DNA from: Ruditapes philippinarum
Taxonomy: Eukaryota
Reading direction: 5' to 3'
Assembly: GCF_026571515.1 (NCBI RefSeq)
Contig: NW_026857787.1
Coordinates: 62,001 to 126,000 of the forward strand
DNA length: 64,000 nucleotides
The notes under the pieces are model-generated. The model did not search any database. It saw only the letters and a list, made by a program, of their open reading frames with translations, and had not been told where the DNA came from. Positions 3,701 to 60,900 of this stretch are shown here, in pieces. A program made the position numbers and the translations under genes. Within the stretch, counting starts at the first letter, position 1, and each line of letters starts with the position of its first letter.

Positions 3701-6700
3701 TACAGTAACGTTTCAAATACATGTGCTACAATTTACTTTCTTTTATAGTCTATAAAGTTTAAATGTTTTAAATACATTTTTGTCCATCCATTCTTTTTTG
3801 CTGACTGCGAATGCTTGTTTGGGACCAATTTATAAATCATAATTATAAATTGCATGTAGAATAAAGTTCATGTAAATTGTCCAGGCACGTGTTTTGCTAA
3901 TATTAAGATATATATCTAAAATTTAATAGATTTTTTTCATTTCGATGTGTCATGTATAAACATGTATTATCTTTAAATACTTCAGGTATGTATACTTGCA
4001 TTTATATAACGAGGAACTGTAAATGTTCATGATAGACGAGGGAATGTTCTGTTCTGTTTTGTAAAAAAGTTATCTGTTGAATGTTTCAGATTGTGGACCT
4101 TTGGAAGATTTGGAAGATTTATCGAATGCTGGCCTTAGATTACTATTTTCTGAAACGAATTACAGATCGCAAGCCGCTATCACATGCGATGAAGGATATT
4201 ATGATTTAAATAAACACGATCAACCAGAAGGCATTTCAACGACAATGATAACTTGTTCTGTAAATGGAACCTGGACTGGTTTACCAATCTGCACCAAGAA
4301 AGGTGAACTTGTTTTATTCTCAATATCTTCTTTCCTGCCGTCCATCTTCCAAAATATCTATTAGACCAAATTTTAGCAAAGCCATGGATTTGAAACACAA
4401 CTGTTATGAAGGAGAGCAATGCCTATTCAATACGCATTATAATACTGCACGTTTGTAACGTCATTTTTCATTGGATAATAGTGACGTTTATATAGTTTTA
4501 TATACACGGCTGCTGTCGATTCATGAAGAAATCTTACGTTTTTTTCTATAAAAATGATGCTTGCTGTATTATAAATTCGTTATAAAGATTGTTGACAGGT
4601 TATATGGCCGTATATAAACGGCTGTTTGCAATATAACCCTCGCCTAACGGCTCGGGTTATATTTACAAACAGCCGTTTATATAGGGCCATATAACCTGTC
4701 AACGATCTTTATAACTAATAGTATATATTCATATAACGTCAAAGGTGCATTGGACCCATTAAGTGCTGAAATCAATTACATAGCATTTATTAAGTGTCAT
4801 TGGACGATTTTTAAGTATAGCAGTAGAATTTTACATTCATTATTTTTTCTCTCGATTCTGATACATATTAAATAAGAACACCGATATNNNNNNNNNNNNN
4901 NNNNNNNNNNNNNNNNNNNNNNNNNNNNNNNNNNNNNNNNNNNNNNNNNNNNNNNNNNNNNNNNNNNNNNNNNNNNNNNNNNNNNNNNNNNNNNNNNNNN
5001 NNNNNNNNNNNNNNNNGTTATTACTGTCTTCGTAAATACTTTATTCACTCCAAATACAATAGGATTTAACTCAATACAGGATTGGAGCAGTACCTCAAGA
5101 CGCTTGCAGAAATCATGATCACAAAATAGACAAATGTGATTTTTTTCGCAGAATTTCACATTTTTCATTCCTTATCGTATATAAATCGGTGTGAAAAGAT
5201 GAGTTAGACGTTTTAAAGTTCATTCCGTAAGGTAAAAAGGCGAGATTTTACCATATAATCATTCAAGTGTCTTGTCCGGTATGTACCCGGAATACTGTAT
5301 TTAATGTGATGCTCCAATCCTTTTTTCAGTCTCACTCAATACAATAATACTGTATGATCTCTTACAAATGTGATTCTTACAATTGTTCCATCAAAACAAT
5401 ATTTATATTATAAACAAGTGAGCATTGGAGGTATAAGTCGCTCGGGTCGCTCTGATTCCAACAAACACTAAGGACACCAGACGGGTCACGTTTGTTAATT
5501 ATATCGGAGTATACTTTAATGAAACAGTTAAACGAAATCACATGTATCCCGCAATATGTAAACCGAAAAATGTTTAACCTCGTTAACGAAGATATGTACA
5601 GACCACGGTAAACTACATAATGATTTAATATTATATATAACTAGCTTCTTTATGACAAAAATTGGCACCGTACAAATAAACAAGATGACAGAAGAGATTA
5701 CAACGCTTGGGGAATCGGGTATAATTCCGTCAGATATGATAAACATTTCATATGGTTAGATTAAGCCTTATACGGGACAAGGTAAAAATCTTAGCACTAA
5801 GAGCAAAATGAATAATGGATAAACTTTTACTCTGTGCCAATGGGTGACTATCAGCTGTCAAACGCGATAAGTTATCTGAAAGTATCGATAGCCATAATGA
5901 TAGCCTCCAAGTACCACTTAGTATTGAAAATAATCCAGGCCACCAACTTTATCACTGCATTGGTTTTAACATGAACACCATTGTTTCACCCTGGGATAGC
6001 AACGCAATACGCATACGCACATATTGTTTAGCCAAGTATTGGGTGGGGGGAAATATCTCTCAACAATAGCTCAAATCTTAAACAAAATATCTTCCACAAT
6101 GGCAGTGTCATCAAGTATGAATAAAATCTACATACATTTCGCCATTTACATTTATGACAGTAGACACTGCATAGGGTGATATAAACCTTGTAAGGTACAT
6201 GAGTCAATAACGCAACATGTCCTCATTCCACACCTATTCAACTCTGTTACGAATGAGAAAACATTTACAGACTACTATGATGAGGCATTTTTAGATTAAT
6301 GATTCAACTTCATTGATAAGCACATCTAATTTGATCTTAAAATAAATATTTGCAACAAATGGTAGTTTGTGGCGCGTATATCCTTCCAATGCTTGATTTT
6401 TGTTGTAAGGTTTGGGGAAGGGCAGTTACATAAATAAAGTGGACATTCAAAAAAAGAGAACTGCCAACATAATCAGTCGCTCATAAGGATAGGGTACTTA
6501 AAACTATACCCCATACTAATAATTTAAAGCATTCGTCATCTTATGTCAGCATTACTGTGTTTTGAAACAAATAAAGTATTACTATCTTATAATGTTTGAC
6601 ATCACTATCTTTCAAAAAAAGCTTTAAAATTCATTTTTACATTACAATTAGATAAACAATGAATTTACCACTTTATATTGATATTATCATTAATTGTAAT

Positions 6701-41532: not shown

Positions 41533-43846
41533 TAAATAAAGATGTGTAAGTCGAAAACACTCTTCCGGACATACAAGTCACTTGAATAATCAATACAGAA
41601 CATATGGTATGAAATCAAATCCAATTCCAGGATAAATGTGCACATTTCGTATTGTAGTTGTTAAAATGTATTAAGCCTATCCGTAGGTATAAAGTTAGTG
41701 AACAGATGAAAGTCAATAATCAAGTTTTTTATTTTGCCGTCATTTCTGTCAGTTTTAATTTTTTTCTTTGCATGAACGGTAAATAACTCGAAAAGTCTAG
41801 GGTAATTAAAATGTCACGTTTCATTTGTCCTTTCTATACCAGTCGTTTCCCGACGCCAAGACATAATTAAAGTTCTTAAAAGGCTTTTATACCTACTTTG
41901 TTATATTTTCTTGCTCTTTTTTTCAATTGTCTGCATTACTTATGCACACTGGAATTAAGGAATTGTTGTTGCAAGTCACGATTTTGTTGGAATGAAGAAT
42001 GCACTGAGCAATGCATAAGTGTCTTTTTACAGGTAGATGGTTCTGCAAGAGACATGTTTTCGCTGCGAAAAAATATTTGTTCTTCAATGCAACAAAATCG
42101 TCGTTACCTGCGACAACCTTTTAGAATTTCAAGTTAGAATATTAAAATCATATGACATAATGACAAAACAGAAGTGTCAACTGAGAGTTTAAATTTCTTG
42201 CGGTGAGGGCACGTATTTTAAAGTCAACGATGACATTTATTTGACAAAAATAATGAAGCAATATTCAAGTATTTGCGAGGATGACATCCCTACATCTTTC
42301 TTATGTATTTTTCTCGATATTTCCTTCTATTCAACGGCCTCTAAGGCCTCTACAACCTTCAGGTTATAATAGACAATTGCATATACCGAACGAACATGCA
42401 GTTCTTTGTCCTATCTATTCATAATATCTATTCATAATTTCATACAAGATGATAATTATGTTTCCGTTGGTATTTTTACTCTATACATTTGGTATTGAAA
42501 ATTCATTTATCCAACATCTTCTGTTTTCTTTATATTTACATGTAGCAAGACAAATATTAACAGCAAAGTTTTGTAAAAGAAATTTTTATGAAACGTAGTG
42601 CTTAAGTAGCATACAGCTCACAGTAACCTTACGTTAATATGTATTGTATTATCGAAAGAGGACTAGCGCCGTGCTTTCGTTTCGCACAACAAAGAGCATG
42701 TATCTCCCAATCTGTTTTATTTTCAAACGGATTTATTCTTTAAGTTTATTCTATGTAAAAAAAAACATTTACGTCATGTTATAATGAAAAAAAAAGGAAA
42801 TTTTAATAATATCAGTATATATAATTGGAACACTGACCCTATCAAACAGTTGATGGTCGATTTGACTCCACAATAAGACCACTTATATACATTATGAGCT
42901 GCTTGTCCTTTTAATAAAATATTGTGTCCCAATTAAGGAAGAAACCAATATAAAAATGGTAATTTGGTAGTCTACCGGCCATTCTGAATATCCAACCTTT
43001 AATAGCCGATTTCTCCACAGTCAGATGACAGGCCACAAGTCCAACACAATTCTCTCCTCTCACCGTTGATCGAGAAATCATTTAGGATTTCATTTAGTAG
43101 TCAGTCACTCGAGAATACATTGGTAATTTCCGGTTAGTTATCTAGGAAGCCGATTTGATGGAACGACCACCGATATTTCACCAAATAAACTGTTAACCTT
43201 GGTGTAAAAACAAATCAAAAACACATCTGCTTGTGTTCTTGTTCATTTCCGATCTAAAGCACGAAATCACTAATTTAAAAGAGGTCTTTTATGTCTACTT
43301 CCACAAGTAAATATGAAAGGTCAGTAACGTGACCTGAAATTAAAATTATCTTGACCGAAACATGGTGTATCCTATAGTTAAAGATGAAAATAATAAAAGA
43401 ACAGTATGTCAATAGACAGTATAAGCATTCATCTCAAACGAAATTATAACTGTATTGTTAGGCACAAGACTTAGTCGGTATAACGTAAAAATAACAATAA
43501 CAAACATGTATGAATTCGTTTATTTTCATTTTTTTGTGTAAAATTTTAGTGACTTATTACAAAGCATGTACATGTCAATTAAATAAACAAGGAAAGAAAC
43601 TAATCACTTTTGAAGCACATCAAAACGTATATTTAATATACTTTTTAAGAGTAATTTATATCTAATCAATCATATTGACAAATTCATTCAAATATTTTTT
43701 TCAATTTATTACATTGTATGTTATCACTTTTTAAAATCAGCACAATGTTGATGCTATTAACTTATATTTCTTGTTTTATTTTGGTTGGCGGCCTTTATGT
43801 GCTGTTTTCTAGTCTTTGGCACACACCAGTTAACGTATCAATAAGT

Positions 43847-44419
43847 TCAGAACCTGTTGATAATATTCCTTAAAACATCCCAATTAACATGTAAATTATC
43901 CGTGTCGCAGTCTTCTATTGCTTGTACAATAACGTCTAGTGTAGCTTGATCCCCTTCTTTCTTTTCCCATTTCAAAAACATTTCATATATGCGCATTGCA
44001 GCAGTATCTTTATTCATACAAATGTGATCTAAAATTATTTTATCAAGACCAAGTTGCAACCCGAGAAGCTCCCAACCTTTCCCAATTGCCATTGCCAAAG
44101 TGCTATACTCTTTATTTGATAATTTTCTCTTCGGAACAGTATCAACTTTTAAATCTGGCTTTAACCATTCCTTCACAATAGTGTGTGTCTGAAGGCAGTG
44201 ACTCGCTCTATCCGGACATGGTACTTTCTCATCACTACATGATTGTATATTGTCAATAGCAAATGTTTCATAACTTCCCTTGCTCCCATGATCTTGGTGT
44301 AAACATCTTGCAGAAATATGACTGATAAAATGCCCCTCATGTTTATTGTCATGCAATTTATGCATCCGTTTGATAATAACCGTCTCTACGTATCTCCGAA
44401 ACATATCACAGACAGCAGC
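43847..44419 (-). CDS. Roco gene: end of COR and C-terminal Death domain (downstream of the premature stop)
   Basis: LSNKEYSTLAMAIGKGWELLGLQLGL...IYEMFLKW...ATLDVIVQAI fits the death-domain pattern; same frame as the COR ORF. Confidence 0.85.
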   Translation of the reverse strand, partial: AAVCDMFRRYVETVIIKRMHKLHDNKHEGHFISHISARCLHQDHGSKGSYETFAIDNIQSCSDEKVPCPDRASHCLQTHTIVKEWLKPDLKVDTVPKRKLSNKEYSTLAMAIGKGWELLGLQLGLDKIILDHICMNKDTAAMRIYEMFLKWEKKEGDQATLDVIVQAIEDCDTDNLHVNWDVLRNIINRF

Positions 44420-45141
44420 CTAAACATTGTCTGGAGGACAGAGACTAACAACAAGAAGCTCGAGTTTGTTTTTCGACAGCATCAGTACACCAGCATGTCC
44501 TCGTTCTATTTCACATGCAGCTACATTATCATATAAAACAGGGTTGCCATTGAACTTGACCAGTGGCCACCGTCCAATTATACGGGCCAAACACGTCTGA
44601 AAAGTGAAGGGCACCATCGTTTCATTTTCAAACTCGTAGCACAAAGAAACAGTTGACAAGGGTTTTCCTTCCAAAAATAACCTCATATTGTCATCATCGG
44701 CTGAAATCTTGAGTAAACTTGGTACAATGAAAAACCCTAATCGCTCAACAGTCATCCCAGAATTATGATTATAAGCTAGGACCTCCGCTATAATATGATG
44801 TTTTTGCATGTACCCTATCAGCAATTGTTTGAATTCATAAAAATCGTTATCTTTTTCTTGTCTCCAAACCTCTTCAAAAAGGTCTGCGCGTAAAATTGCT
44901 GTCGTACACAATTCCTTCCATAAGCTTCTCATTTTCGGACGCACTTTGCAAAATTTTTCAGATGTTATAACGCACCTGAAAGCATCAACAAGAAACTGTG
45001 GATCTAAGACAACATGGTCTGACAAATTATCCTCATCAAAATAACAGAATGTTCCCTTTGAATGATGATATGAAAGAAACAGTTTGATCTGGTCCATTGT
45101 TTCTCTTGAGTTGTCAGTTTGTAATGGACTGTCCGTTTGAC
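44420..45141 (-). CDS. Roco gene: COR domain segment
   Basis: FLSYHHSKGTFCYF...VVLDPQFLVDAFRCVIT...FIVPSLL; TAG at 44422-44420. Confidence 0.88.
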
Positions 45142-45314
45142 ATGTAGTTCTCCGCGTTACATCGTATAGACGGAGAACTGTTGTCTCAACAGGTGCGATA
45201 TCAAAACTGGTATAACCAGTTTGGTCACGTGATAAGAGTTATTGACCGTGCGTACGTACGATTAGTGGTCAGTTCTACAGAGACTCTCGCTTGGTACACG
45301 TCGTTAACTACATT
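45142..45314 (+). repeat. Split direct repeat A1 (173 bp)
   Basis: Identical by eye to 50501-50673. Confidence 0.95.
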
Positions 45315-45328
45315 GGGAAGTTTTTATC

Positions 45329-45623
45329 ATGGATCGAGATACTCACGACATTATCAAGGACGTTTGTAAAGGACACCGTGGAGAAAGCAGGCAGTCTTTA
45401 CTTCAAGAAATTGGGACGATGTTCGAAAAGATAAGTGAACAAAATAATTCTTCTCAATTTGCTAGAATAAGCAATTTAGTGGCATCATCTCAGCCAAAAT
45501 TTAAAAGGAAAAGCAACGAAGAACAGTTTTGTCATAATAGTAAATTTATGTTGAAGCTTAATGAAGCCGAGTCTAAGTTAGATAGCAGTAAAATTGAGGA
45601 GGCCAAAAGCAGTATTACAACAG
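45329..45623 (+). CDS. DIRS gag-like exon 1
   Basis: MDRDTH...KFKRKSNEEQF...AKSSITT; donor ACAG|gtttgt. Confidence 0.75.
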
Positions 45624-46560
45624 GTTTGTGTTTAAAAAACAAAACAAAAACTTAATGAATTCTACTCTATTCCATTTATAAGAAGCATTTTCAATTTGCA
45701 AAAGCTTGGTTTTTATTCAGCAGTTTTAAATTCGGGATACAATTAATAAATTCGCTATTTTCTAATAGTTTTTACGTGTTTAATGTGTAGACCACGTGGT
45801 CTCGATACACGTGTCTTTTGTTATACTAGAGGTGAATTGTTCTGTATGAAGATTGTTGGGATATGTTTATTGCTAAAGGAATAGTAATGCTAATAATAAG
45901 AATGATAATAAATATAAAAATTATATGTCTATTATATTTAAAAAAAAAAAAAAATCTTTGTTTCTTCTGTTTTCAAATTTATTTAGATTAATGTCTTTTT
46001 GGACATAAGTACATAAAAAAAAAAAAAAAAAAAAAAGATAAAGATTTTATAAGCTGATGTGATCAATATAGATGTTTTTTGCATGGTTAGCAATGACTAA
46101 TGTGGACTCGCCTTTTCTTTAACATGTATAAATAGGGGATTCATGTTTTATAGTATTACTGATATAGTTACATTATAAACTTGCATACGCATGTCACAGA
46201 TTTAAAACCCGTTGCGTTGGTAATGCGCAGGCCGATATGAATAAGTTAGAGTAGTATCATTTATAAATAAATTAAGTGATACTATAAATGGCGGTAGCAC
46301 GGGTTTTGCATGTTTACTGATTGAGATATTTTTAAAGTATAGCAAACACAGGAAAACTACGAATGACGGTAATATATTAGTATTTGTTAGATACGGCTTC
46401 TTTTATTTTCAAAGTTTGTAAGAAAATTATGTATTATATCAATGTGATTTTCAGTTACAAGGATTATATCACAGGAGTTGATTATATTGACTCATAAAGA
46501 TTATATTATTTATAGAAATTATGTTAAATATTTTTAGTAATAGGCAAATTTTTCTTTCAG

Positions 46561-47970
46561 CCTTGGATATTTTGTCACACCGACAAAAGATGATACAGTT
46601 GGCGGATGCTAGTGAATTGGGGTGGAGAGTAGTTCATGAGTATGAACAAAATCCTCTAGCAGACGACAGCGATGATGAAAAGAAAATGTATAAAGCTGAA
46701 GTCAGGGCTGACAGGAAGTTCAAAGCTGAGAAAAATAAGAAGTCTAAAAAGTTTAGAACCAAGCCTTACACCAGGAGTGTACCTGCACGAGCTACAAGTC
46801 AATCCACTTCGCAGCAATTTGGTGTACAGAAACCAGGCTTATGTTTTTACTGTGGAAAGCCGGGTCACTGGAGAAAAGAATGTCCAGCAAATACTACAAA
46901 TTTGAATAATAAGATGAGTACATTTTGTTTATTTAATAAACATTGCGATATGCTAGACAGTGATTCATTGAATCACAATTACAGGGAACAAATAAATAAT
47001 GAGGCAATTAGTTGCGATTCGAACCAAAATGATTCAGAAAATGAAATCGTTGTATTTCCTAAAAAATGTTTAAATCTTAATGTTTCTTCTGTGAATCACG
47101 GATATTGTTCTCAGCTGAACAGTGAATGCTCAGTATCAGTAGCAGAGCATTTTGGGTCTAAAAAAGAAAAACTTAAATGTGTAATATCGCCAGTAGGAAG
47201 ATTGAAGGCTCATGCTAGCAAATGGCGATCTATCAATGGCGATTCTTTCATTGTAGACGTTATAGAAAATGGTTACAAATTGCCATTTAGAAATATTCCT
47301 AGTAAAGTAATGCTTAAAAATAATAAGTCCGCTAGAGACAATCCGTCTTTTGTTACGACGGAAATAGAGTGTTTACTAGAAAAACATGTTATTTCGGTAG
47401 TAGATCACGTGCCTGAAGTTGTAAATCCGTTGACTGTGGCTTATAATAAGGCCGGAAAAGCAAGGTTGGTTTTAGATTGTAGGCATGTAAATCAGTTTTT
47501 GCATCTATTCAAAATCAAGTTTGAAGATGTTCGTGTCGCTCAGTCTCTATTTAGTGCTGGGGTTTTTGCTTTTACTTTTGATTTGAAAGGAGCTTATCAT
47601 CACATCGATATTTTTCAAGCTCATAGGAAATATTTAGGTTTTTCATGGATCTATAATGGTCAACAGACTTATTTTGTGTTTAATTCACTTCCATTTGGAA
47701 TAGCTAGCGCAGGGCATATTTTTTCTAAAACTGTCCGAGTATTGGTCATGTACTTAAGGTCATTAGGTCATAAGGTGATAATGTATCTTGACGATGGCAT
47801 CGGTGGTCATATTAATTTCCGAGAAGCATTAGAAAGTAGTGCATTTGTAAAAAGTACATTGATTAAATATTATATAATAGTTTTTTTGTTTGCGGAAGAA
47901 AAGTGTCATTGGTTTTCCTGTCAAAAAGTCACATGGTTAGGTTGTAATTTTTTTTTCATAATAAGTTTTT
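46561..47970 (+). CDS. DIRS gag exon 2 (CCHC knuckle) continuing in frame into reverse transcriptase
   Basis: RQKMIQLADASELGW...DDSDDEKK; CFYCGKPGHWRKEC; FDLKGAYHHIDI, LPFG, YLDD. Frameshift in the T-runs near 47950-47970. Confidence 0.92.
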
Positions 47971-48847
47971 TGTCACAGAAGAACGAATGTCTGTCACAGA
48001 CAACTCAATTGGGTCTGAATTACATCAGATAAGTTGTGACAAGTGTAGTGTTCTACCAGTCCGTGTGTTAGCGTCTTTGGTTGGACGTCTGATTTCTCTT
48101 CAATTTGTCTTTGGTAACATAGTGAGATTGAGAACGAGAGAGATGTATAAATGTATCATCTCTAGGGCTAGTTGGGACTCGCCAGTTTTAGTGAGCGAAT
48201 CAGCCATACATGAAATTATGTACTGGAAAGAAAATGTAAGAAAATTGAATGGATCAGGTAAATACATGTCTGAAATGAAAGTGTACGATATACACGTATT
48301 TTGCGATGCCAGTGGATCTGGTTATGGTGGTTACCTATATTTTCCGAGCAATGAAGCTCAATTACATTCTAATATTCAAATGAGTGGAACATTGCTATCC
48401 CCGGAAGTGGATTGCATGTCGAATGTTATGTTGAAATCACCGATTTCTTCAGCTGTTTCCCCGGAAGTGGAAAAATGTATGCTAGATAATACAAAGAAAA
48501 GTATAGATATAGATACGAAAGTCACTGGAAGTTGGCTTTTTGAAGAACAGATTAAAAGTTCTTCTTGGCGTGAGGTTGAGGCAGTGAATAGGGTTGTTAG
48601 AAGTCAAGCACAATTTCTCAAAAACAAAAATGTGAAAGTTTTTTCTGATAATCAAAATGTAAAATCGATTCTTTTGAACGGCAGTGTTAACGCAGAGCTT
48701 CAAAAAATTGCTTTAGGTTTCAATGATTTTTGTGAAGAAAATAATATCCATATTAGCCCGGAATGGATACCTAGAGACAATAATCAGATATCAGATTATT
48801 TGAGTAGATGTCTTGTTTGTGATGATTGGTCAATATCAGATCGTTGA
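47971..48847 (+). CDS. DIRS RT connection and RNase H
   Basis: FCDASGSGYGG...SSSWREVEAV...FSDNQNV...WIPRDNNQISDYLSR. Confidence 0.9.
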
Positions 48848-49260
48848 TTCAGATATTTTGATTGTATTTGGGTAATACACACAATAGATAGGTTTTCTAC
48901 TCATTATAACACTCATTGTGAAAGGTTTAACTCTTAGTGGTGGGTACCAGGAACGGAAGCTATAAATGCTTTGGATCAGTCCTGGAAAATGATAATAATT
49001 GGTTAGTTCCCCACTCGGCTAATAGTAGAGTGTATAAACAAAATTGTAAAGGAAAATGAAAGTTGCACATTAATTATACCAAAGTGGAAATCTTCAGCTT
49101 TTTTTTGGCCTTGCTTGTTTGATACAAAACGTAATTTTAAAACTTACATAAGAAATGCAGAGGTTTTTACAAAAAATGGAATAATACGTACTGCGAAAGG
49201 TAATAACGGCGTGTTTGCACACACACAATTGCGTTTTGTATGCTGGCACTTAAGATCAGG
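48820..49260 (+). pseudogene. Degenerate DIRS adenine-methyltransferase-like domain
   Basis: DDWSI...HTIDRFSTHYN..C.RFNS*WW.PG.EA.NA..Q.W / NNWLVP / TLIIPKWKS..FWP, with two stops and frameshifts. Confidence 0.75.
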
Positions 49261-49317
49261 TTTTAGTTTGGAGTGCCAATATAGAGACATGTACTGTATT
49301 CTATTTTACAGTATTTT

Positions 49318-50361
49318 ATGAAGTTTATGATATTTGTCATTTCGATTATAGGTGTTGACTTAAAACCTTCAATCAGGAGCATGATGAACAACGCAGGAGT
49401 GGACATTCAAAAACATCAAACTGTTATTGATCACATGGCAGGTTATATTGTACAATCCCGGGCAGTTTCTACTAGACAGAAATATATGAACTATTTCAAA
49501 CATTTCGAAAAATATTGTGTCAAAAATGGTTTTGTTTCCAAGCCAGCTTCATCTATAGTTGTAGCAATGTATTTAACAAACATGTTAGATCACGGAAAGT
49601 CGTACGGTGTTATTTCTTCTACCGTATATTCTATTAAATGGATGCATTCTTTGCATGATTATGTGGATCCTACTACGAATTCAATGGTTAAACATTTATT
49701 GGAAACAAGTAAACGAGAATGCTATGAACCTGTTAAAAAGAAAGATACAATAGATTCGGAAATGTTACAAACATTATGTGATAATTTTTCAGATTCCAGC
49801 GACGTGGTAACCTTAAGAGATCTGTCAATTATTCTTTTAGGTTTCGCTGGGTTTTTACGTTTCAACGAACTGAATTCTTTAATTTGTTCAGATATAACAT
49901 TCAATGATGATCACTTAGTGATAAACATTCGTAAGAGCAAAACTGATGTGTATAGGCAAGGAAAATCTGTTCCGATTTGTAAGGGTACTACTAATGCATG
50001 TCCTTTTAATATGCTTAAAAAATATATGAGGGCAGCTTGTCTTGACGTAACCTGTAATGAATTTTTGTTTAGGCCATGTTTTAGGTCAAAGGGGGTATCG
50101 GCGCTTATAAAAAGTAATAAAAAGTTGTCTTACACACGAGTTAGGGAATGCATTTTGTCTAAATTAAAGTTAGTAGCACCAAATTTAAATTTAGGTACAC
50201 ATTCTCTGAGAGCTAGTGGAGTTACGGTGGCCGCTAACTCAGGTGTGTCTGATAGATGTTTAAAGAGACATGGCCGTTGGAAAACTGATATAGCTAAGGA
50301 CGGTTATATTGTTGATTCATTAGGCAGTCGATTGTCAATTACAAAAAAGTTAAAGTTATAA
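49318..50361 (+). CDS. Tyrosine recombinase (intact ORF)
   Basis: Catalytic set GFLRFNE (R), KSKTD (K), HSLR (H..R), HGRW and DGY (Y). Confidence 0.95.
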   Translation: MKFMIFVISIIGVDLKPSIRSMMNNAGVDIQKHQTVIDHMAGYIVQSRAVSTRQKYMNYFKHFEKYCVKNGFVSKPASSIVVAMYLTNMLDHGKSYGVISSTVYSIKWMHSLHDYVDPTTNSMVKHLLETSKRECYEPVKKKDTIDSEMLQTLCDNFSDSSDVVTLRDLSIILLGFAGFLRFNELNSLICSDITFNDDHLVINIRKSKTDVYRQGKSVPICKGTTNACPFNMLKKYMRAACLDVTCNEFLFRPCFRSKGVSALIKSNKKLSYTRVRECILSKLKLVAPNLNLGTHSLRASGVTVAANSGVSDRCLKRHGRWKTDIAKDGYIVDSLGSRLSITKKLKL

Positions 50362-50442
50362 GTATTTTATAGATACTTTTTTATAAACATATGAATAATT
50401 AATTGAATTTTAATGTTTTTCGTCTCAAGCTTTGTAATTTCT

Positions 50443-50673
50443 ATACGTGTCTCGCCTTGCAGTTGTTGTTGTTGTTGTTTTGGATAGTGCCTGTTGAGAC
50501 ATGTAGTTCTCCGCGTTACATCGTATAGACGGAGAACTGTTGTCTCAACAGGTGCGATATCAAAACTGGTATAACCAGTTTGGTCACGTGATAAGAGTTA
50601 TTGACCGTGCGTACGTACGATTAGTGGTCAGTTCTACAGAGACTCTCGCTTGGTACACGTCGTTAACTACATT
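50443..50673 (+). repeat. Internal B1+A2 junction of the split direct repeats
   Basis: B1 50443-50500 abuts A2 50501-50673 directly. Confidence 0.95.
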
Positions 50674-51137
50674 AAAATTCAATAACATTTGTGCAAAATG
50701 ATGTTTATATATGCTTTTATTTGTTTAATTAAGAGGCATGTCTGAACTGTTTCCGTTGTTCAGTATTTCTAGGAATAGTCGGGGCATTTCAATGTTAACG
50801 CATTGACTAGGCTACGGAAACACGTTTCCTCCTGTTTTTAAAAAATAATGAAAAGAAAAGATAGGGGGTTTTTCGTGGGCGGCCCGTATTCTGATGAAGA
50901 AATATACGTTTGAATTTTCGATTTCCGTCATGATTGAAAACATTCTGGCTTTGCTTTAGAGGTTTTATCAGATTATTAACATGACGCAAATCGCATTTTC
51001 GATTGTAGCATGCTTATATTTATCTAATAGAATACACATGATTAATGAGTGATTAATTCTTGAGTTATAGAATTATATTGTAATAGAAAAGTATTATTGT
51101 AATAACGAATGTTTACTCCTCAGTTGTGTACCAATAA

Positions 51138-51195
51138 ATACGTGTCTCGCCTTGCAGTTGTTGTTGTTGTTGTTTTGGATAGTGCCTGTTGAGAC
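51138..51195 (+). repeat. Split direct repeat B2 (58 bp), preceded by AATAAA
   Basis: Identical to B1, including (gtt)6; aataaa at 51133-51138. Confidence 0.95.
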
Positions 51196-52365
51196 TGTCT
51201 ATTTCTATAAGTTCATCAAGTTTTATAATTCTTTTGTGTTTGTTCATTTTAAGTGCTTTCTCAAGTAGAATCCATTTAGCCGGAATTCTTGTTTTCATTT
51301 GTATTTTTCCTAAACGTGTTATATACGACCGTAAAGCATCAATTTCGCTTTCTGACTCACTTGTATTTGAAATAGCAAATTGATCAGGTTGAATATGATT
51401 AAGACATACACTGTCGTCAAATATTTGCCTGACCTCCTCAAAATAGTCCTCGACCTTACTGTCCATATTTAGTTTGTCCGTGTGGGTTCCTACTAAAATA
51501 ATAGCCGGTTCCATTCCATCCCTACTGCCAACAAATGAATTTACAGAAGCCACCCAGAATTTTAAATAGTCCCTCATTCTCTTTTGATGTAATGGGAACT
51601 CCTTATCTTCAATTATTGTGTCCAGGGATATGCTTAAATTAAACACTAGCACATAAACAGCATGTTTTGAATGAAATATTTGATGGGTAGCATAATAGAC
51701 AAACTGTCCTCCGAAGTCCCATATATTTAGCGTAACATTGTTGTCAAGGTTTATTGCCGCCTCAATGGATTCAACTCGTTTTAATTCAGTCTGAAATGAA
51801 TTTAAATTTTCGTAATTGACTGTTTTATTTCTAACATAAATATCAACAGCGCCAGCAATTTTAGTTTTGTTTTCTTTAACGTTTTCTCTTCTTTTGCCAT
51901 TGTACTCATCAGATATATCAATTATTTCGAGACCACGTGCTGAACAAATTTTGTTTTTATCTCTTGTTCTTGATATATCCGTAACTGAAGTGGGTGCTTC
52001 TTCATCTTTGTTAAGCAGTCCTTTTTCCCCATGAGTAACCGATGCAAATGTCTCGTACGTTCTTTCTCTTAGTGCAATATTGACCAAGCGCTGAACAGTT
52101 TCTTCGTCAAGATCTTCATTGTCTAACTTCTTCCATTCATTTTCGCTGATAACTGTGCATTTATGCAAGTCAATACCGTTGGTTGTTTCAACTCCTTCAA
52201 CTGACTTTTTCAATAAACGCCTTACTAATGACGTTTTGCCTTGCTCGCAACAACCAATAACCATAACTCGTATTGTGTTATCATTTTCTGTCCCTTTCTC
52301 TAATGCTTTTTCATAGAGTTCTCTTGTTTTTGGATCATTTGAAAGCTCATCTGGTACTGTATTTT
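51196..52365 (-). CDS. Roco gene: Roc GTPase domain and start of COR
   Basis: Acceptor ttttatag|AAAATACA; G1 GCCEQGKTS, G2 TNGID, G3 WDFGGQ, G4 VGTHTD, G5 ISN; then IPAKWILLE. Confidence 0.93.
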
Positions 52366-52694
52366 CTATAAAAAAACAAACATTAAACTACCATTTTTTC
52401 GTTACATGTGTTAAAACTTAGCCCATTCAAACAAAATATCTTTTTCAGCGTTTGCATTTTAATGGCGAACTTAAAATATCAATCAATATCCAAGACAACT
52501 AGGGGAAGGTTAATATATTAAGGTACTCAATCTACATAAATTTTGTAGATTTTTTGGGCCCTTTTTTAAAATGCCATCAGACATTTAGGAAAATAAGATC
52601 TGTTAATTGTAATTCTAAACTTTGCAGTACGGAAAAATTGGAAAGGTTGCATGTAGGATACAAATTAAGTCTAAAGAAGCATCAAACAATATTT

Positions 52695-54165
52695 ACAAAA
52701 GGGCCATGAGTCCTGAGTCGTTCACCAGAAACAACTGCTTTTCAGTAGAAGATAAAAGACGCCCCTAATAATGCTACAGACAAAGTTTGGTGATCATCCA
52801 TCAATCATTTCAGTTGGAGATGATGTTCAAATGTTTTTCTAATTACAGCTTTAGCGGCCCATAAATGGGGCAAATCAAATTGATACGAGCAAATGTGATA
52901 AAAGACTACCTAAGAATACTACAGACAAAATTTTGTGATCAACCATAAACTATTTCAGTAGGAGATGATGTTCAAAGGTGTTTCTACGTTTAGCTGTATC
53001 GGCCCCTAAAAGGGGCAAATCAAATTAATATGAGCAAACTTGTGAAAAGACAACCTGCGACTGCTACAAACAAAGTTAAATGATCATCCGTCATTTATTT
53101 CAAAAGGAGTTGATGTTCAAAGGTTTTTCTATTTTTAACTTAAGCAACCCCTAAAAGGGCCAATCAAATTAATATTAGCAAACTTGATAAAAGACTACCT
53201 AAGAATGCTACTGACAAAATTTGGTGATCATCCATCGATTAGTTTTGTAGAAGGAGACGTTTAAAAGTATTTCTGATTTTAGCTTAAGCAGTCCCTAGAA
53301 GAGGCCAATCAAATTAATATGAGCAAACTTGATAAAAGACTACCTCGGAATGCTACAGACATAATTTGGTGATAATCCATCAATAATTCAGTAGGAGATG
53401 ATGTTCAAATATGTCTAATTTAAGCTTTAGCGGCCCCTAAAAGGGGCCAACCAAATTAATATGAGCAAACCTGATAAAATACTACCTAAGAATGCTACAG
53501 ACAAAATTGGTGATCATCCATCAATTAGTTCTGTGGAAGGAGACCTTCAAAGGTATTTCTTATTCTAGCTTTATCGGCACCTGAAAGGGGCCAATCAAAT
53601 TAATATGAGCAAACTTCATAAGGCATTACTTAAGAATGCTACAGACAAAATTTGGTGATCATGCATCAATAATTCTTTAGGAGATGATGTTCAAATGTTT
53701 TTCTTTTTTAGCTTTAGCGGAACCAAAAAGTAGCCAACCAAATTAATATGAGCAAACTTGATTAAATACTACCTAAGAATGCTACAGACAGAGTTTGGTG
53801 ATCATCCATCACTTACTGAAGTTCTGCACAAGGAGATTTCTAAAGGCGTTTCTTTTTTTAAGTCTAGAAACCCCTAAGAATGCTACAAACAAATGTTGGT
53901 GATCATCCATAATTTAATTTAGTAGTAGAAGATGTTTTAAGGTTTTTCTATCTTTAGCTCTGTTGACTCTTAAAAGGGTCCAATTGAAATGACATGAGCA
54001 AATTTAAGTGTGACTGTCACAAGGATGCTACAGACCAAATTTGAGGTAAATCTGCCCATTATTTGCAGAATAGAAGATGATTGTTTACACATGACGACGG
54101 ACCCCGAGTACCCCCTTTGATACTAATAGCTCAACCTGAATCTGCATCTCTGATTAGCTATAAAT
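52695..54165 (-). mobile_element. Helentron/HINE-like element with about nine 144-bp tandem subunits (Roco intron)
   Basis: Unit atgctacagacaaa.tttggtgatcatccatc...aaattaatatgagcaaact; termini acaaaagggccatg and atagctcaacctg...agcta. Confidence 0.75.
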
Positions 54166-54175
54166 GGCGACTCAC

Positions 54176-54263
54176 CATTGCTTTTCGTTTCGTTCATTTC
54201 GTGTTTGTCTAATGGTGCGGTTAATTTTATACCAAAATTGAGAATGGTATGGTTAGTGTAATA
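54176..54263 (-). CDS. Roco gene: SH2 C-terminal exon
   Basis: tttcag|TATTAC; YYTNHTILNFGIKLTAPL...SN+G|gtgagt. Confidence 0.85.
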
Positions 54264-54902
54264 CTGAAACGAAATAATGATCAAATAAATAATTTAGCGC
54301 ATATATTCATACCAGCTTTTGCATTATAAAGCAAGTGGTCTTGGATATTTCATAGGAATATAACGCTTATCACGCTAACGCTTTAATGATGCATCTTCTA
54401 TTTAGTAGTGATTTTCCGTCATAAGTTATTGTTAATCATGTGGATTTTGTTTGTTTGTTTCATTTTACGCCTTTTCCCAACACTATTTCAGTCATATAGG
54501 CGGGTAGTTTCCTAACCATTGTTCCTGGAGAGTTACACCAGTACTAGACAACCTTCCTCCGCGCTAAACTATAATCACGTGGAAAGCTTTGCTATGATGT
54601 TAAAACATATATATTATAAATATTATAAAACAATATATATATGCTGTTTCTTAGTTCAAACAATTAAGCATGTAAATTGAAAATAACATTTTATGCTATA
54701 ATACTAAGTAATATCCAAATGAATATTATTACTAATCAATATGTCTTTTTATAAACAAACAAAACTGGTTATTGCTTCTCATTTCATGTATATCAAATGT
54801 GTATACAGGAAATGCAACACTGGCACTTATTTTAGCAAAGGAAAATGTTCATGCTTAAAAGAACTTAAAAGCAATAGAAATTTACAATTTTATCTTACTT
54901 AC

Positions 54903-55140
54903 TTCTATAAGTTTTGGTATACTAAAGAAAATATTATCATCCCTCTCAATTTGAAAATATTCACCAGGATTTGTGTACTTGATTTGAAACTGGAGTGCTT
55001 GTTTTCCAAGCGTTGGTCTTTTTACAACAAGAACAAGCCAATCTGGATGTGATTGACTTCGTCGTACGAGAAAGGTTCCATTTTCCTGATATTTCAGAAG
55101 TTTCTCTGATTTAGCATAAGAAATATTTCCATGGAACCAC
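54903..55140 (-). CDS. Roco gene: main SH2 exon
   Basis: WFHGNIS...GTFLVRRSQS...FFSIPKLIE|gtaagt. Confidence 0.93.
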
Positions 55141-55449
55141 CTGGAATTTGAATTTCCGAGTTCGTTCAACACAGCATATATAATTTGAATCTGTGATATG
55201 TATCTATTTAAGATGTCTTAATACGGAAATGTTAGAGCTACATGAAAATAAACGGAAAATACGCGGAAATGAGTAGAACTCTATATTGGTTGTCTTTAGA
55301 TTTCACTCCTTAGCTGGAAATGAAATGGTTACAGTTTATGTCCTTGTAAAAAAAAGACTTTATCTGTAGCTTTTTGTAAGTATTATTAATTCAATGTTTT
55401 CTCTTTTTTGGTTGTTAATCTGTAAAAAAAGAAATTATTTAATACTCAC

Positions 55450-55505
55450 GGGAAATCGTCAAGAGGGGCATCCGCTTCAATGACGTTGATCCAGTCCTTG
55501 CCATA
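55450..55505 (-). CDS. Roco gene: WW-SH2 linker exon
   Basis: YGKDWINVIEADAPLDDF(P) joins WFHG in phase 2; donor gtgagt. Confidence 0.82.
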
Positions 55506-55905
55506 CTTAAAATTAATATCGTAATTGTCAATTTTCCGGATGGTCAAAATAATACTCAAGATAATGCCATGAATATGTGTTTATAATTGTATATAGGTAT
55601 GATCACATGATTATATTAATTAAGAGGACATCCTATGCGGATGTGTGGATGCATGCTAGATACTGGGTCATTTATATACAGTTTAAATGTTGGGTATGTA
55701 GAGTTGCTATCTCGTGTATTGTAGTTACGAATTAAATACAAAGAATATTTAAGTGTTGTTGAATTTAAAAAACCTAAGGTTCACTGACATTTTTTTTCTT
55801 TCGACTTTACTCCTTACTATATTTAAACAACAACAACACTGACAACAACTAAAACATCATGTATTGTGGAAAATTATTTTAGTTCATATATTTAAGTTAA
55901 CATAC

Positions 55906-55961
55906 TTTTTTGGTTTGGACACCAGATTCTTTTGGATCTTCCAACTGGGCCAGCCTTTTTT
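55906..55961 (-). CDS. Roco gene: WW C-terminal exon
   Basis: tctttag|AAAAAAGG; KKRLAQLEDPKESGVQTKK|gtatgt. Confidence 0.8.
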
Positions 55962-56665
55962 CTAAAGAAAAGACGCAAAATGATGCAAAAACTGGCGTGT
56001 TATTTAGCTACCTTTTATAGAATTAAAATAAATGTAGATAAGGTTAAAATAGTCTTGAGTTCTCTTTTTATAATAAATACGGTAGTAATTTCCTTAAAGG
56101 CCAGAACAAATATTTTGTGGTGTTATGTGTTCATGTTCGTCTTTTGTCCATTTGTTATGGGTGATTGAACTGGTTTTGCAAGTTATGTGATGGATGATTG
56201 ATTTTGGTATGCAAGTTATTTTTAGATGATTTGGTTCTGGAATGTAACAATTTTTACTCCATGACTCGTTTTTGAAGTGACAACATTAATCCTTCACTGT
56301 TTTTCAGTAATTTCTCTACAGAAATAATTGCTTTTTATTTTTATTAATTATTAAACTCTTCTCTCTTCTATCAAGCCTTTATACATTATAAACAATTTCA
56401 CAAATAAATATATGTTGTGTAATATGTTGTACTATGTATTTTGTGAAATGCATTTGTCTTGTTAAATATGTGTTACGTAAGTGATGTCTTATTGTTATTC
56501 ATTTGTTGCAGGTTTAATTCGTTATTAAATAAATACATCTAAACCTCATTGCGTGTTGGATTGACATAAACCCCACCACTACATATTGGCTCCCATGTTG
56601 ACATTGATGAAAGTCAACTTAAACGCTCTCGACTCTTGTTAAACATGATTGCGATGTTGTTGGGG

Positions 56666-57340
56666 TTTTTTATGCCCCCGAAGGCAGGCATAATATAATC
56701 GCACCGTATGTCTGTCCGTCCGGGTATCCGTCCGTCCGTAGGTCCGTCTGTGCGTCCCCACTTCATTCGTGTCGGACTGTAACTTTGTTATACATTAAGG
56801 GATTTTGAAATAACTTGGCACAAATGTCTACCACATCAAGACGATGTGTGGCGTCCAATAACCACGTCCCGACCTCAAAGGTCAATGTCACACTATCGTT
56901 TTGAAGTTTTACATTATTGTAATGAGAGTCAATAGGTTCACACATTGGTCATGCATCGAATGATTTTAAAATAACTTGGCATTATGTCTTCCACATCAAG
57001 ACAATGTGTCGCGTCTAAGAATTACGACTCTACCACAAAGGTCAATGTGACACTAACATCTGGAAGTTTCACATCACATTTAGAATTAATAGGTACACAC
57101 AATCGTGTCCGGGCTGTAACTTTGTCATGCATGGAAGGATTTTTAAATAACTTAGCATAAATGTCCACAACATCAAGACGATGTGTCGCGTTTAATAATA
57201 ACGTCCCTTTCTCAAAGATCAAGGTCACACTACCATGTTGAAGTTCACTTAAGCACAATTAAAGTTTAAAGGTACACACATTCGTGTCCGGGCTGTAACT
57301 TTGTCAGGCATTGAAGGATTTTAAAATAACTTATAACATA
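56666..57340 (+). mobile_element. Truncated Helentron/HINE-like element with about 175-bp subunits
   Basis: tttttatgccccc...ggcata, (ccgt)n, repeated tcgtgtcc.ggctgtaactttgt and aaggtcaa.gtcacac. Confidence 0.7.
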
Positions 57341-57512
57341 AAATACCTAGCAGCTGAAAGGTACGATATTAATTAATTACCCTTAGATTTATACGTTTGT
57401 GTGTGTATTAAAACATACGCCTTAGAACATGCTTAACGTCTATGAAACAAAAAGAGATGTCATACTTTACGTTAACGGAAATGATCGGGATAAGATAAAA
57501 GATAAAACTTAC

Positions 57513-57570
57513 TAGGGTGAACATAAAATACACGACCATGGATAGTATCATATCTCTTCTCCCATCCATC
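57513..57570 (-). CDS. Roco gene: WW domain exon
   Basis: ttttcag|GATGGATGG; DGWEKRYDTIHGRVFYVHP+A|gtaagt. Confidence 0.85.
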
Positions 57571-57890
57571 CTGAAAATAATGCATTAAAAAAAACTGTAA
57601 GGCATCACAAGTTTATCCTACCATAATTCAATCTAGGGCAGCACTAAATTTATAAATAATAAACATGAATTCAAGTAGAGGAATAGGAACGAGATTTAGC
57701 TTTAAAATATTTATTGTTAATGGTTTTGTACGAAATGACAGGCATAGGCATAAATTGTGGTTATTCCAAATTCTAACACAACACGACCCTCATTTTTCCC
57801 TTATTGAACATTAGGACCGAAGTGTGGTGTGTGTTAATATGTAATAACATTACTGTTATAAAATCATTGTCGAAAACAAGTGATTCTTAC

Positions 57891-57920
57891 TTCTAAGCTT
57901 TCTTCTCTGGAGTCTTCCAT
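57891..57920 (-). CDS. Roco gene: probable first coding exon
   Basis: aactATGGAAGAC; MEDSREESLE|gtaaga, phase 0; an acceptor (ttttgtgcag) just upstream suggests a 5' UTR intron. Confidence 0.72.
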
Positions 57921-60900
57921 AGTTTATATCTCACAATCCCTGCACAAAAAGGAATGCTTCTTCAGTGTCTATACCGCTGAAGTGTTACAGTGTTAAAAAA
58001 TATATTTAAGTTTATTGATTTAAGTTGATTATTATTCAGGACAAATTAAAACAACATATATCTTGATACAACTTTTGTACATGACAAATATAAATCAATC
58101 TATAAAGCTTCTACAAAATTATCTTATACTCAGAACTAGGGCATATTTGCCAGCTTTAACATTCGCAAATAAAAATTTGCTTTACACTTCACGCGTTATG
58201 ATGAACACACAATTTGCTTCATTGAAAATTTTTAAAAAATGCAATACCACTCAATATCCGCCTCACTTCTTATTCTTTGACATACCATGTAAACATAACA
58301 TATATATCTAGATCCAATGCAATTATTTCCTTATGGTTTAATTTTTATCTTTCTGGCTTTGATTATACATTATTTTTATTTATTACCATGTATATTTGTG
58401 ACCGGTAAAGTGATTTGTATCGATCATGTTATGTTGTTATTTATAAATTTTCAAAGGATGCAATCTTTTTATTCTTATACTTTATCTTTTTAAACGGCGA
58501 CAACAATAATGCTTTGAAGTAGATTTAATATAAAAACAGAAACAGAAATATCAACTTCATAATTTAGCGTCTATCATTGTTTGTGTTTGATACTGTTTTA
58601 CAACAGACCATATTCCAATTATTGTTTTAGCGGTTGTAAGTCAATCAAACCAGTGTTCCGCACTTCTTTACCCGTATAAACTAAAATACGTACTCAAATA
58701 CACAAGCACGCACACACACGCACGCACATTCGCACAAACACGTACACTAACAAAAAGGAACAACGAGCTGCTTATGATGACCCTGCATCTCAAAAGAGAG
58801 TTACATATTGTCAAAGCACGCTAAATTTAATTGACTGTTCAATGTCAAATGTCAGTCACACTTGGTTTGTCGTTTTTAAACAGACTACATGTTTTTGTTT
58901 CTTTATATTACTTAAATATATATTTTGCAAAATGATTCCTGACTCTAAGCCTCTTGGCATTGTATTTTCACATAATTAATTAAACATATTGAGCTAGTAC
59001 GTTCTATACATCTATACACTTAGTGACCCTTCAGGAAGCAACATCCACATTTGAACCGAGGGTTGGAGACATGATTTATTTAATTTTATAGTGGACAACA
59101 AGGTGAAACCTAAGTAAAATAAATGACCCCCAACAGCAAGCTATTTATAAACCTCATTGCCATTACTAATTTCACTTTCATAAAGATCAACAAGGCAATA
59201 CTAAATGCAAAAACTATTTGTAATGAAGTAATACGACAGAAGACTTTGATGTATTTCTTTAAACAAGCTTATATTAAGTCACCCCCGGGTTTCGGCCACT
59301 TTTCATCCCAGAAGGTTTATATAACACCTGTAGAGGACCACACGGTGATTCTTTGTGCAAAATAGCTTAGCTCCAATCATTATACTTCCAGAGCAGAAGC
59401 TTGTCAAGACACGTTTAAATTGTATAAATTAAATGAACCAAATTAAACGCTCGCCCATTTTTGACCCTAGAGGCATCATATTATCTTCTTGAAGAGATCA
59501 AACTAGGCAACACTACCCATCATATATGTAATTTATTGTCATATAATTGTTGTTTTAAAACAAAACTTTTTTGTATGATATTTAAATACAAATGAAATTC
59601 TCTCCGGAATCGGACCAGTTTTGACCTTAGAGGCATGATTTATTTTTAACTTTTGTCGAAAATGACTAGGTACATGCCAAATATAAAGATAATGGTTCTT
59701 CTTGAAAAAGACTTTTACTTGACAAATCATTTTAAACAAACCCTCAAGAAAGTGTATTGTTACCGTAGAGGCAAAATTATATAATTTTGTACAAATCAAC
59801 TTGGCAATGCGTCATGCCAAATATCTAAGCCTTCTCTTGAAATTGAAGTTTTCCAAATTCTAAGAAGACTTAAATGTATATTCCGATTCACTTCTCTTTA
59901 AACTACAACAAGAGCATGATTTATATCAATTTTGTTCGGGATCGCTAGATCATCCTACATACCTAATATTTAAGACATAGACATTGAAGGTTTTGAACAG
60001 TCCTTTGTGATATTTCACTTTAAATGTCTACATAAATTTCGTGAGACCTGGTTGAGAACCAAGTTTTACGTCAGAGGTTTGCTTTACATAAATTTTTTAG
60101 CGATTTTAATAATTGATAATGCCAAATATCTGAGCTCTGTGCATTTTAGTTCCATGTATATTGGCATAATAAATGAAGTGATCTATAGGGTGGGCAATAT
60201 TTTGATCAAATAAGTATGAGTTATTTAAGTTAGCAGAGCACAAGTTGATGTCAAACATCTTAATTCTAGGCATTGTTGTTTTTGAGAATATTTCATTTTA
60301 AGTTTTTTTTTTGCTCCTGTAGCCTGCCTACTAATGCATTCAACTGTAATCATTTATACACATTTTAATGTTTTGTTTGTCCAAATCAAATCCAAAGTTT
60401 TGGGGAAATGTTTGTGTGCGTGTGTGTATTTTATCTATTTATTTATAATCAATTTATTTTATTAGAAATTGTAGGTGGAGGACAGACAATAATGCTGTCA
60501 AAAATGCCTATTTTCATCTCTATTTTTTTGGAAAATGTTGTGTACAAACATTAGCATTATAAAACTTTGGTGCAAGCTGTTTATTTTGTTGTTTTTAATG
60601 TTTACACTTTAGAATGCGAGTTAAGGCGATTCGGAAATGTAAACAATGTAAATACATACTTAGGTATTACAATTGTTATACATCTCAAATGTGTTTTGAA
60701 TTGTGGATTTGTATTGTTCAGCTGTTGCCAATAGTTAAAGTGTTATTTACATATAACATGTTTAACCGAAACCATTACTAAGATTTGTTTTAAAACAAAA
60801 CAAAATTTTATTTATTGCTTAATATATGTTCCTGCACAGTAAATTGTATTGTTAAAACAAAACTAAACATTCCTCAAATAGTTTCTAACAAACGAGAGCT

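Follow-up and report, generated by a model that had tools for sequence, protein, structure and literature searches.

LOC132751023 of the Manila clam: a probable seven-exon WW-SH2 Roco gene, disabled in the assembled haplotype, and its modular Roc-COR-Death family

Can the Roc-COR switch of Roco proteins stand between a front end that reads phosphotyrosine and a Death domain at the C-terminus, with neither leucine-rich repeats (LRR) nor a kinase in the same chain? The question is raised by LOC132751023, a gene on the minus strand of a 64,000-nucleotide stretch of the Manila clam Ruditapes philippinarum (the whole stretch is called the window here, and all coordinates are counted from its first letter), for which the original prediction, made from the letters of the DNA, had claimed the domain order WW, SH2, Roc, COR and Death. 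In RefSeq the gene already has a model, the product of which is listed as uncharacterised. To our knowledge, Roco proteins have been studied almost solely by way of LRRK2 and DAPK1, and the purpose of the Roc-COR switch is debated; a single Roc-COR-Death core that is wired to many recognition domains amounts to a natural experiment on that purpose. The analysis described below shows that the WW-SH2 Roco is a real, unusual variant within a large, undescribed modular family. LOC132751023 itself is probably a transcribed seven-exon gene that belongs to this cassette family, with an ancestral product of about 995 amino acids in which WW-like, SH2, Roc, COR and Death domains follow one another, and it has been disabled twice in the assembled haplotype.

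Domains, exons and transcripts

The domain order was searched with Pfam, exon by exon, with the joined N-terminus represented by the RefSeq protein P0165. This protein is isoform X2 of LOC132751023; it has 589 amino acids, is 100% identical to exons 2-6, and takes its C-terminal end from the residues of an inserted element that is described below. The claimed succession of WW-like, SH2, Roc, COR and Death, without LRR or kinase, was borne out in the exons and in the proteins of two intact genes (LOC123559654 and LOC123559656) of the hard clam Mercenaria mercenaria, P0154 (993 amino acids) and P0001 (989 amino acids), which lie on one chromosome and have the full WW-SH2-Roc-COR-Death architecture. 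The SH2 match (53 bits against a cut-off of 21) retains the FLVR arginine in the motif FLVRRS, and the Death match (6.1e-10) scores 39.5 bits against a cut-off of 22.6. The Roc match (3.6e-15, 56.7 bits against a cut-off of 27) falls into two stretches, as it does in most family matches too, and the motifs G1 (GCCEQGKTS), G3 (WDFGGQ) and G4 (THTD) can be read in the sequence. Between G1/switch I and G3 the domain carries about 150 extra residues (window 51730-52130, minus strand; residues 256-380 of P0154). COR-A is matched with E = 1.2e-7 over profile positions 37-142, its first third being cut off by the element, and is full-length in P0001 and P0154. Neither a kinase nor ankyrin repeats were matched by Pfam in the single exons or in P0165, P0154 and P0001, and no ATPase of the NACHT or NB-ARC type turned up, which leaves Roc as the sole NTPase domain found.

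A predicted model of P0154 (predicted local distance difference test score, pLDDT, 77) was compared with known structures by Foldseek. It matched the RocCOR of LRRK1, LRRK2 and the Roco protein of C. tepidum (RocCOR structures 3dpu and 6hlu, and 3dpt for COR alone) as well as the SH2 domains of SHP-2 and Src; the nearest solved SH2 domains for this ortholog are the C-SH2 of SHP-2 and that of CSK. The Death domain is modelled as helices at residues 905-991 with a pLDDT mostly of 82-94 (mean about 90), and the extra Roc segment as two long helices around some 80 residues that are predicted to be disordered. For the WW-like domain, three strands are tentatively placed at 14-18, 23-28 and 33-35, at a pLDDT of just 62-69.

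A further feature lies between COR-B and Death, where a pattern of cysteines and histidines (window about 44200-44350, minus strand; P0154 residues 835-890) includes C842, H847, C871 and H877, each with a conservation of at least 90% across 61 members of the family. The pattern falls within a small, confidently modelled unit of strands and helix in P0154, and it may bind zinc.

All of the peptides quoted in the original prediction were found at the positions claimed for them on the minus strand, and the small exons that it had joined in phase to the SH2 exon and the Roc exon have GT-AG borders and compatible phases, as do all seven exons of the gene (Table 1). The exons add up to 2,988 nt, so that the predicted count of 996 codons was reproduced, provided that position 51196 is joined directly to 45138 and the TAG at 44422-44420 is read through. 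The 996-codon model thus stands as a count, but it ignores both lesions, and the window copy cannot make a 996-residue protein.

Table 1. Exons, lesions and related features of LOC132751023 in window coordinates
Feature	Position	Strand	Description
Exon 1	57891..57920	-	ATG at 57920; 10 codons; GTAAGA donor; phase 0 end; junction 57891|57570 in X1 contig; matches the RefSeq P0165 N-terminus exactly
Exon 2	57513..57570	-	WW-like strands 1-2 (GWEKRYD...VFYVHP); Pfam WW 9e-5, profile positions 3-21 of 31, exon alone; junctions in X1 contig
Exon 3	55906..55961	-	End of WW-like domain; position of second signature Trp is Leu (QLEDP)
Exon 4	55450..55505	-	Linker YGKDWINVIEADAPLDDFP; phase 2 end; 72-89% identity to the C4484 copy and Mercenaria P0154
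Exon 5	54903..55140	-	SH2 core (WFHG...FLVRRS...); Pfam SH2 3.2e-14, 53 bits
Exon 6	54176..54263	-	SH2 C-terminal strand and linker (KLTAPL...); phase 1 end; junction 54176|52365 in X1, 54176|52356 in X3 and X4
Large exon, upstream part	51196..52365	-	Linker and Roc GTPase; phase-1 acceptor; alternative acceptor at 52356
Inserted element	45139..51195	+	Tyrosine-recombinase retroelement of the DIRS order, 6,057 bp, in antisense orientation to the gene
Large exon, downstream part	43847..45138	-	COR-A, COR-B, Cys/His-rich stretch, Death, stop codon; in frame with the upstream part after removal of the element; collinear with 11 paralogs
In-frame TAG	44420..44422	-	Within COR, upstream of Death
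Candidate poly(A) signal	43632..43637	-	ATTAAA; inferred

Evidence that these exons are joined in the cell comes from transcript contigs of four runs from the same organism, which were compared with the window over 51960-57959. In run X1, one contig of 3,387 nt carries all six predicted junctions exactly, including 54176/52365, and the introns that it skips all read CT..AC when viewed on the plus strand; it agrees with the window to at least 99%, with one to four mismatches per exon segment. The SH2 exon is therefore joined to the Roc exon in transcripts, as the original prediction had proposed. Runs X3 and X4 contain three and two of the junctions, and there the acceptor of the Roc exon lies 9 nt further in (52356), which is the acceptor of RefSeq isoform X2. 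The introns of LOC132751023 are in part without transcript coverage and the reference genome holds no intronless copy of the gene, and the contigs can therefore be taken as spliced RNA. The X1 contig also reaches 2,300 nt past 51960, a length that fits an mRNA lacking the element and ending 26 nt after the ATTAAA at 43637; from this extent we infer that the message may have been element-free.

Lesions in the window copy and the fate of the gene

The original prediction spoke of one large Roc-COR-Death exon. No intact exon of this kind is present in the window, where it is split by the element of 6,057 bp and also carries the in-frame TAG. The reading frames of the element match the Pfam families zf-CCHC, RVT_1, RNase H and Phage_integrase, and because a zinc knuckle, a reverse transcriptase, an RNase H and a tyrosine recombinase occur together, it can be assigned to the DIRS order of retroelements. 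It carries split direct repeats (45139-45314 with 50498-50673, and 50443-50500 with 51138-51195), and since these are 100% identical the insertion is very recent. The trinucleotide GAC is found at both ends of the element, and the insertion point is a GAC core between Roc and COR. In the closest paralog the corresponding empty site, ...ATAGACAGTCAAACGG..., is uninterrupted and contains GAC once (GTC on the strand of the gene), and the core is also present in the two paralogs that come next. The insertion was therefore precise, and taking the element out brings the gene back into frame. As assembled, the reading frame enters the element and stops after 27 foreign residues. At the codon of the second lesion, the TAG at 44422-44420, six of six close paralogs have AAG or AAA (lysine), and the lesion is read as a nonsense change from AAG to TAG. 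An uninterrupted frame from the ATG to the Death domain was not encountered in the window, and the window copy is a disabled allele or a pseudogene. It provides a dated example of a retroelement knocking out a Roc-COR-Death gene.

Only one other full copy exists in the genome, on contig C4484, which is 90% identical to the window copy and has the same upstream exons. This sister copy has its own TAA in Roc, and its RefSeq product ends at 367 amino acids. The dN/dS ratio (nonsynonymous to synonymous change) between the two copies is 0.30 at a dS of 0.16, and both copies were therefore under purifying selection until recently. The protein collection contained no intact Manila clam protein with the WW-SH2 architecture; WW-like, SH2, Roc, COR and Death stand together, intact, in the two Mercenaria genes.

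A third copy of the SH2 module, at C7878:41106-41342 and its flanks, is limited to exons 4-6, which are 69-80% identical. No Roc-COR-Death exon was found within about 9 kb downstream of it, and no WW exon was detected at the locus, which represents either a fragment of a gene or a portion of a different one.

The gene may still work somewhere in the population, a reading to which we give slightly less than an even chance. The reference would then happen to carry a null allele; the insertion of the element, possibly together with the TAG, would be polymorphic, and expression would come from alleles that are intact. The identity of the element repeats, which dates the insertion as very recent, speaks for this reading, as do the dN/dS of 0.30, the presence of a further haplotype in X3, and the X1 contig, which is at least 99% like the window and whose 2,300 nt past 51960 fit an element-free mRNA. 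That last argument, from the extent of the contig, is indirect, however, the transcript comparison having covered 51960-57959; and the protein collection offers no intact Manila clam protein of the WW-SH2 type. Close to an even chance, but not quite reaching it, is also our estimate for a fixed pseudogene that is still transcribed, with the WW-SH2 subfamily decaying in Ruditapes and retained in Mercenaria. The window copy bears two independent lesions, its sole full sister copy is stopped by a TAA of its own, and the third locus keeps exons 4-6 only, all of which speaks for this reading. Against it stand the dN/dS of 0.30, which indicates constraint over most of the divergence, the youth of the insertion, and the recovery of correctly spliced transcripts in at least three studies.

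A more radical explanation would dissolve the architecture altogether, by assigning the WW-SH2 exons to an adaptor gene of their own, situated upstream of a Roc-COR-Death gene and fused to it by artefact. This is highly improbable, given that a single X1 contig runs through all six junctions and on into the Roc exon, that the exons occur in the same order at C4484, and that two Mercenaria genes share the architecture; nor is any start codon or promoter-like break needed to account for the gene as modelled.

A Roc-COR-Death cassette with many front ends

A search with the Roc piece returned 47 further loci in the genome with open frames of at least 700 amino acids, a lower bound for the size of the family. 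The unit that they share is a cassette in which Roc, COR and Death are encoded by one exon, about 2.46 kb long. Across the paralogs examined, the phase-1 acceptor with which the large exon starts is homologous and precedes a (V/L)P(D/E)E motif, and 11 aligned paralogs are collinear through COR and Death.

In front of this cassette, models from RefSeq and other sources place a wide range of domains, namely HEPN_DZIP3 plus nSTAND3, Ig, HEPN alone, a Ras-like GTPase, DUF4559, SH2 plus tyrosine kinase, SH3 plus SH2, Ser/Thr kinase, and helicase-C plus PDZ. On contig C7470, the modelled HEPN-nSTAND3 exons lie 3.2 kb upstream of the cassette on the same strand. The 'swappable sensor end' of the original prediction is upheld by these predicted models and by the core tree, in which close relatives share the Roc-COR-Death core and differ in their N-termini. 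A broader role for WW-SH2, as the general front end of the family, was ruled out: ten further paralogs, each inspected over 7-8.5 kb upstream, have no WW or SH2 exons.

The core tree was built with both sides of the window's large exon in one row, the element break and the TAG being entered as X. The two Manila clam WW-SH2 copies fall in a fully supported, species-specific clade of seven members, the other five of which lack WW-SH2, and the Mercenaria WW-SH2 pair is the sister of this clade. Such a pattern could reflect either the replacement of front ends among recent paralogs, after the species split, or gene conversion that homogenised the large exons. The forms with SH2 plus kinase and with SH3 plus SH2 lie far off on the core tree, with SH2 domains that are only about 27% identical, and SH2 was probably recruited more than once; because the branches of these forms are long, this conclusion is tentative.

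Three further sets of predicted models deserve mention. P0168 and P0169 of Ruditapes philippinarum place an SH2 domain and a tyrosine kinase domain before Roc-COR-Death, and would thus be Rocos with an N-terminal tyrosine-kinase module. P0183 (from ENA) has SH3 and SH2 before the same core. Mercenaria P0007 and P0008 have nearly identical Roc-COR-Death cores (branch lengths about 0.09) behind an Ig I-set and a HEPN_DZIP3 front end, respectively, and are a candidate for a second recent front-end swap.

A possible Roco-based counterpart of NLR proteins

SH2 domains bind phosphotyrosine by way of the FLVR arginine, and Death domains assemble homotypically. The Roc-COR tandem has been described as a GTP-regulated dimer switch (PMC6337361, PMC4104024). 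If these activities are combined in the intact form, the SH2 domain would dock the protein on a tyrosine-phosphorylated partner, the Roc-COR tandem would respond to GTP by switching its conformation or its dimerisation, as it does in other Rocos, and the C-terminal Death domain would then nucleate homotypic death-domain complexes. Overall, this would be the sensor-switch-adaptor logic of the NLR/STAND type, built on a Roco GTPase, and by analogy the WW-SH2 Roco might have a role in immunity.

This scheme can be extended into a bolder proposal, which we regard as speculative and, taken as a whole, rather unlikely: that venerid clams run a Roco-based counterpart of the NLR system, with dozens of single-exon cassettes whose recognition ends (WW-SH2, SH2-tyrosine kinase, SH3-SH2, HEPN-nSTAND3, Ig, PDZ) are exchanged by exon shuffling on short time scales, and in which the WW-SH2 form couples phosphotyrosine signalling to death-domain assembly and segregates as presence and null alleles. 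Several observations weigh against the main reading of LOC132751023 and the function proposed for it. The WW match on P0165 scores 21.0 bits over profile positions 1-31, below the cut-off of 26.9, and the matches on P0154 and P0001 score 20.4 and 18.9; the first signature tryptophan is kept (GWE), but the second is leucine in three of the four WW-SH2 genes and lysine in P0001, so that the tryptophan of the ligand groove is absent. The recognition of proline motifs that the original prediction had assigned to this domain is thus doubtful, even though the WW-like exons are conserved (dN/dS 0.05-0.4). The alpha-A arginine of the SH2 domain is tyrosine in both Manila clam copies and arginine in Mercenaria. 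Both the window copy and its sole sister copy are truncated in the reference, and the WW-SH2 variant may be on its way out in Ruditapes philippinarum. Finally, the N-termini of the other family members are RefSeq predicted models, and if the large exons have undergone gene conversion, the tree could show an apparent exchange of N-termini.

How far the family departs from known systems can be judged from several comparisons. DAPK1 is likewise a Roco protein in which Roc-COR is followed by a C-terminal Death domain, but it has an N-terminal Ser/Thr kinase, a calmodulin-binding segment and ankyrin repeats; the clam protein lacks kinase and ankyrin and has the WW-like and SH2 domains instead, and the clam core forms a large lineage-specific family of its own. 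The Roc-COR fold is shared with LRRK1, LRRK2 and the bacterial Roco proteins of C. tepidum and M. barkeri, which provide the top Foldseek matches to the P0154 model; in contrast to these, the clam protein is without LRR, kinase or WD40, has the insert of about 150 residues in Roc, and ends in a Death domain. The original prediction had given LRRK1/2, MFHAS1 and DAPK1 as the established animal Rocos, a list that is valid for vertebrates only, since precedents have been published for Trichoplax and Aplysia. CARD, death and Ras-like domains occur in proteins of the Roco expansion of Trichoplax (PMC4104024). Aplysia has Roc-COR proteins with TIR or Death domains for which a role in immune signalling was proposed (PMC9334734). 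Like the clam proteins, these are invertebrate combinations of Roc-COR with death-fold, TIR or Ras-like domains, but neither study contains WW or SH2 front ends, the single-exon cassette or the expansion in venerid clams. In the literature searched, no published description was found of the WW-SH2-Roc-COR-Death architecture or of the four gene identifiers.

NLR/STAND switches resemble the clam family in their three-part logic (variable recognition end, NTPase switch, death-fold adaptor) and in their lineage-specific expansion in sessile marine invertebrates. The likeness is one of logic only, since in the clams the NTPase is Roc, a Ras-like GTPase paired with COR, instead of a NACHT/NB-ARC ATPase, and the domain order is reversed. 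A framework exists for the way in which death-fold proteins have expanded in separate lineages of sessile marine animals (PMC8195603). In brown algae, LRR-ROCO genes have diversified by exon shuffling and were proposed to form a repertoire of immune receptors (PMC11378527); the algae shuffle LRR exons within one architecture, whereas the clams exchange whole, unrelated N-terminal domains. The clam family suggests that Roc-COR can act as a general switch from signal to death domain, and would provide the expanded innate-immunity and cell-death toolkits of sessile marine invertebrates with a further branch that is based on a GTPase. With the intact Mercenaria genes, the Roc-COR-Death proposal becomes testable.

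Two minor features of the window may be added. A run of 129 N occupies positions 4888-5016. The intron that separates exon 5 from exon 6 contains some 125 bp (54446-54571) with a summed contig depth of 15,000-52,000 in all four runs and with numerous unrelated loose ends at 54444-54446. Nothing that accounts for this depth came out of Rfam and tRNA scans of the introns, and the stretch is probably a very abundant interspersed repeat.

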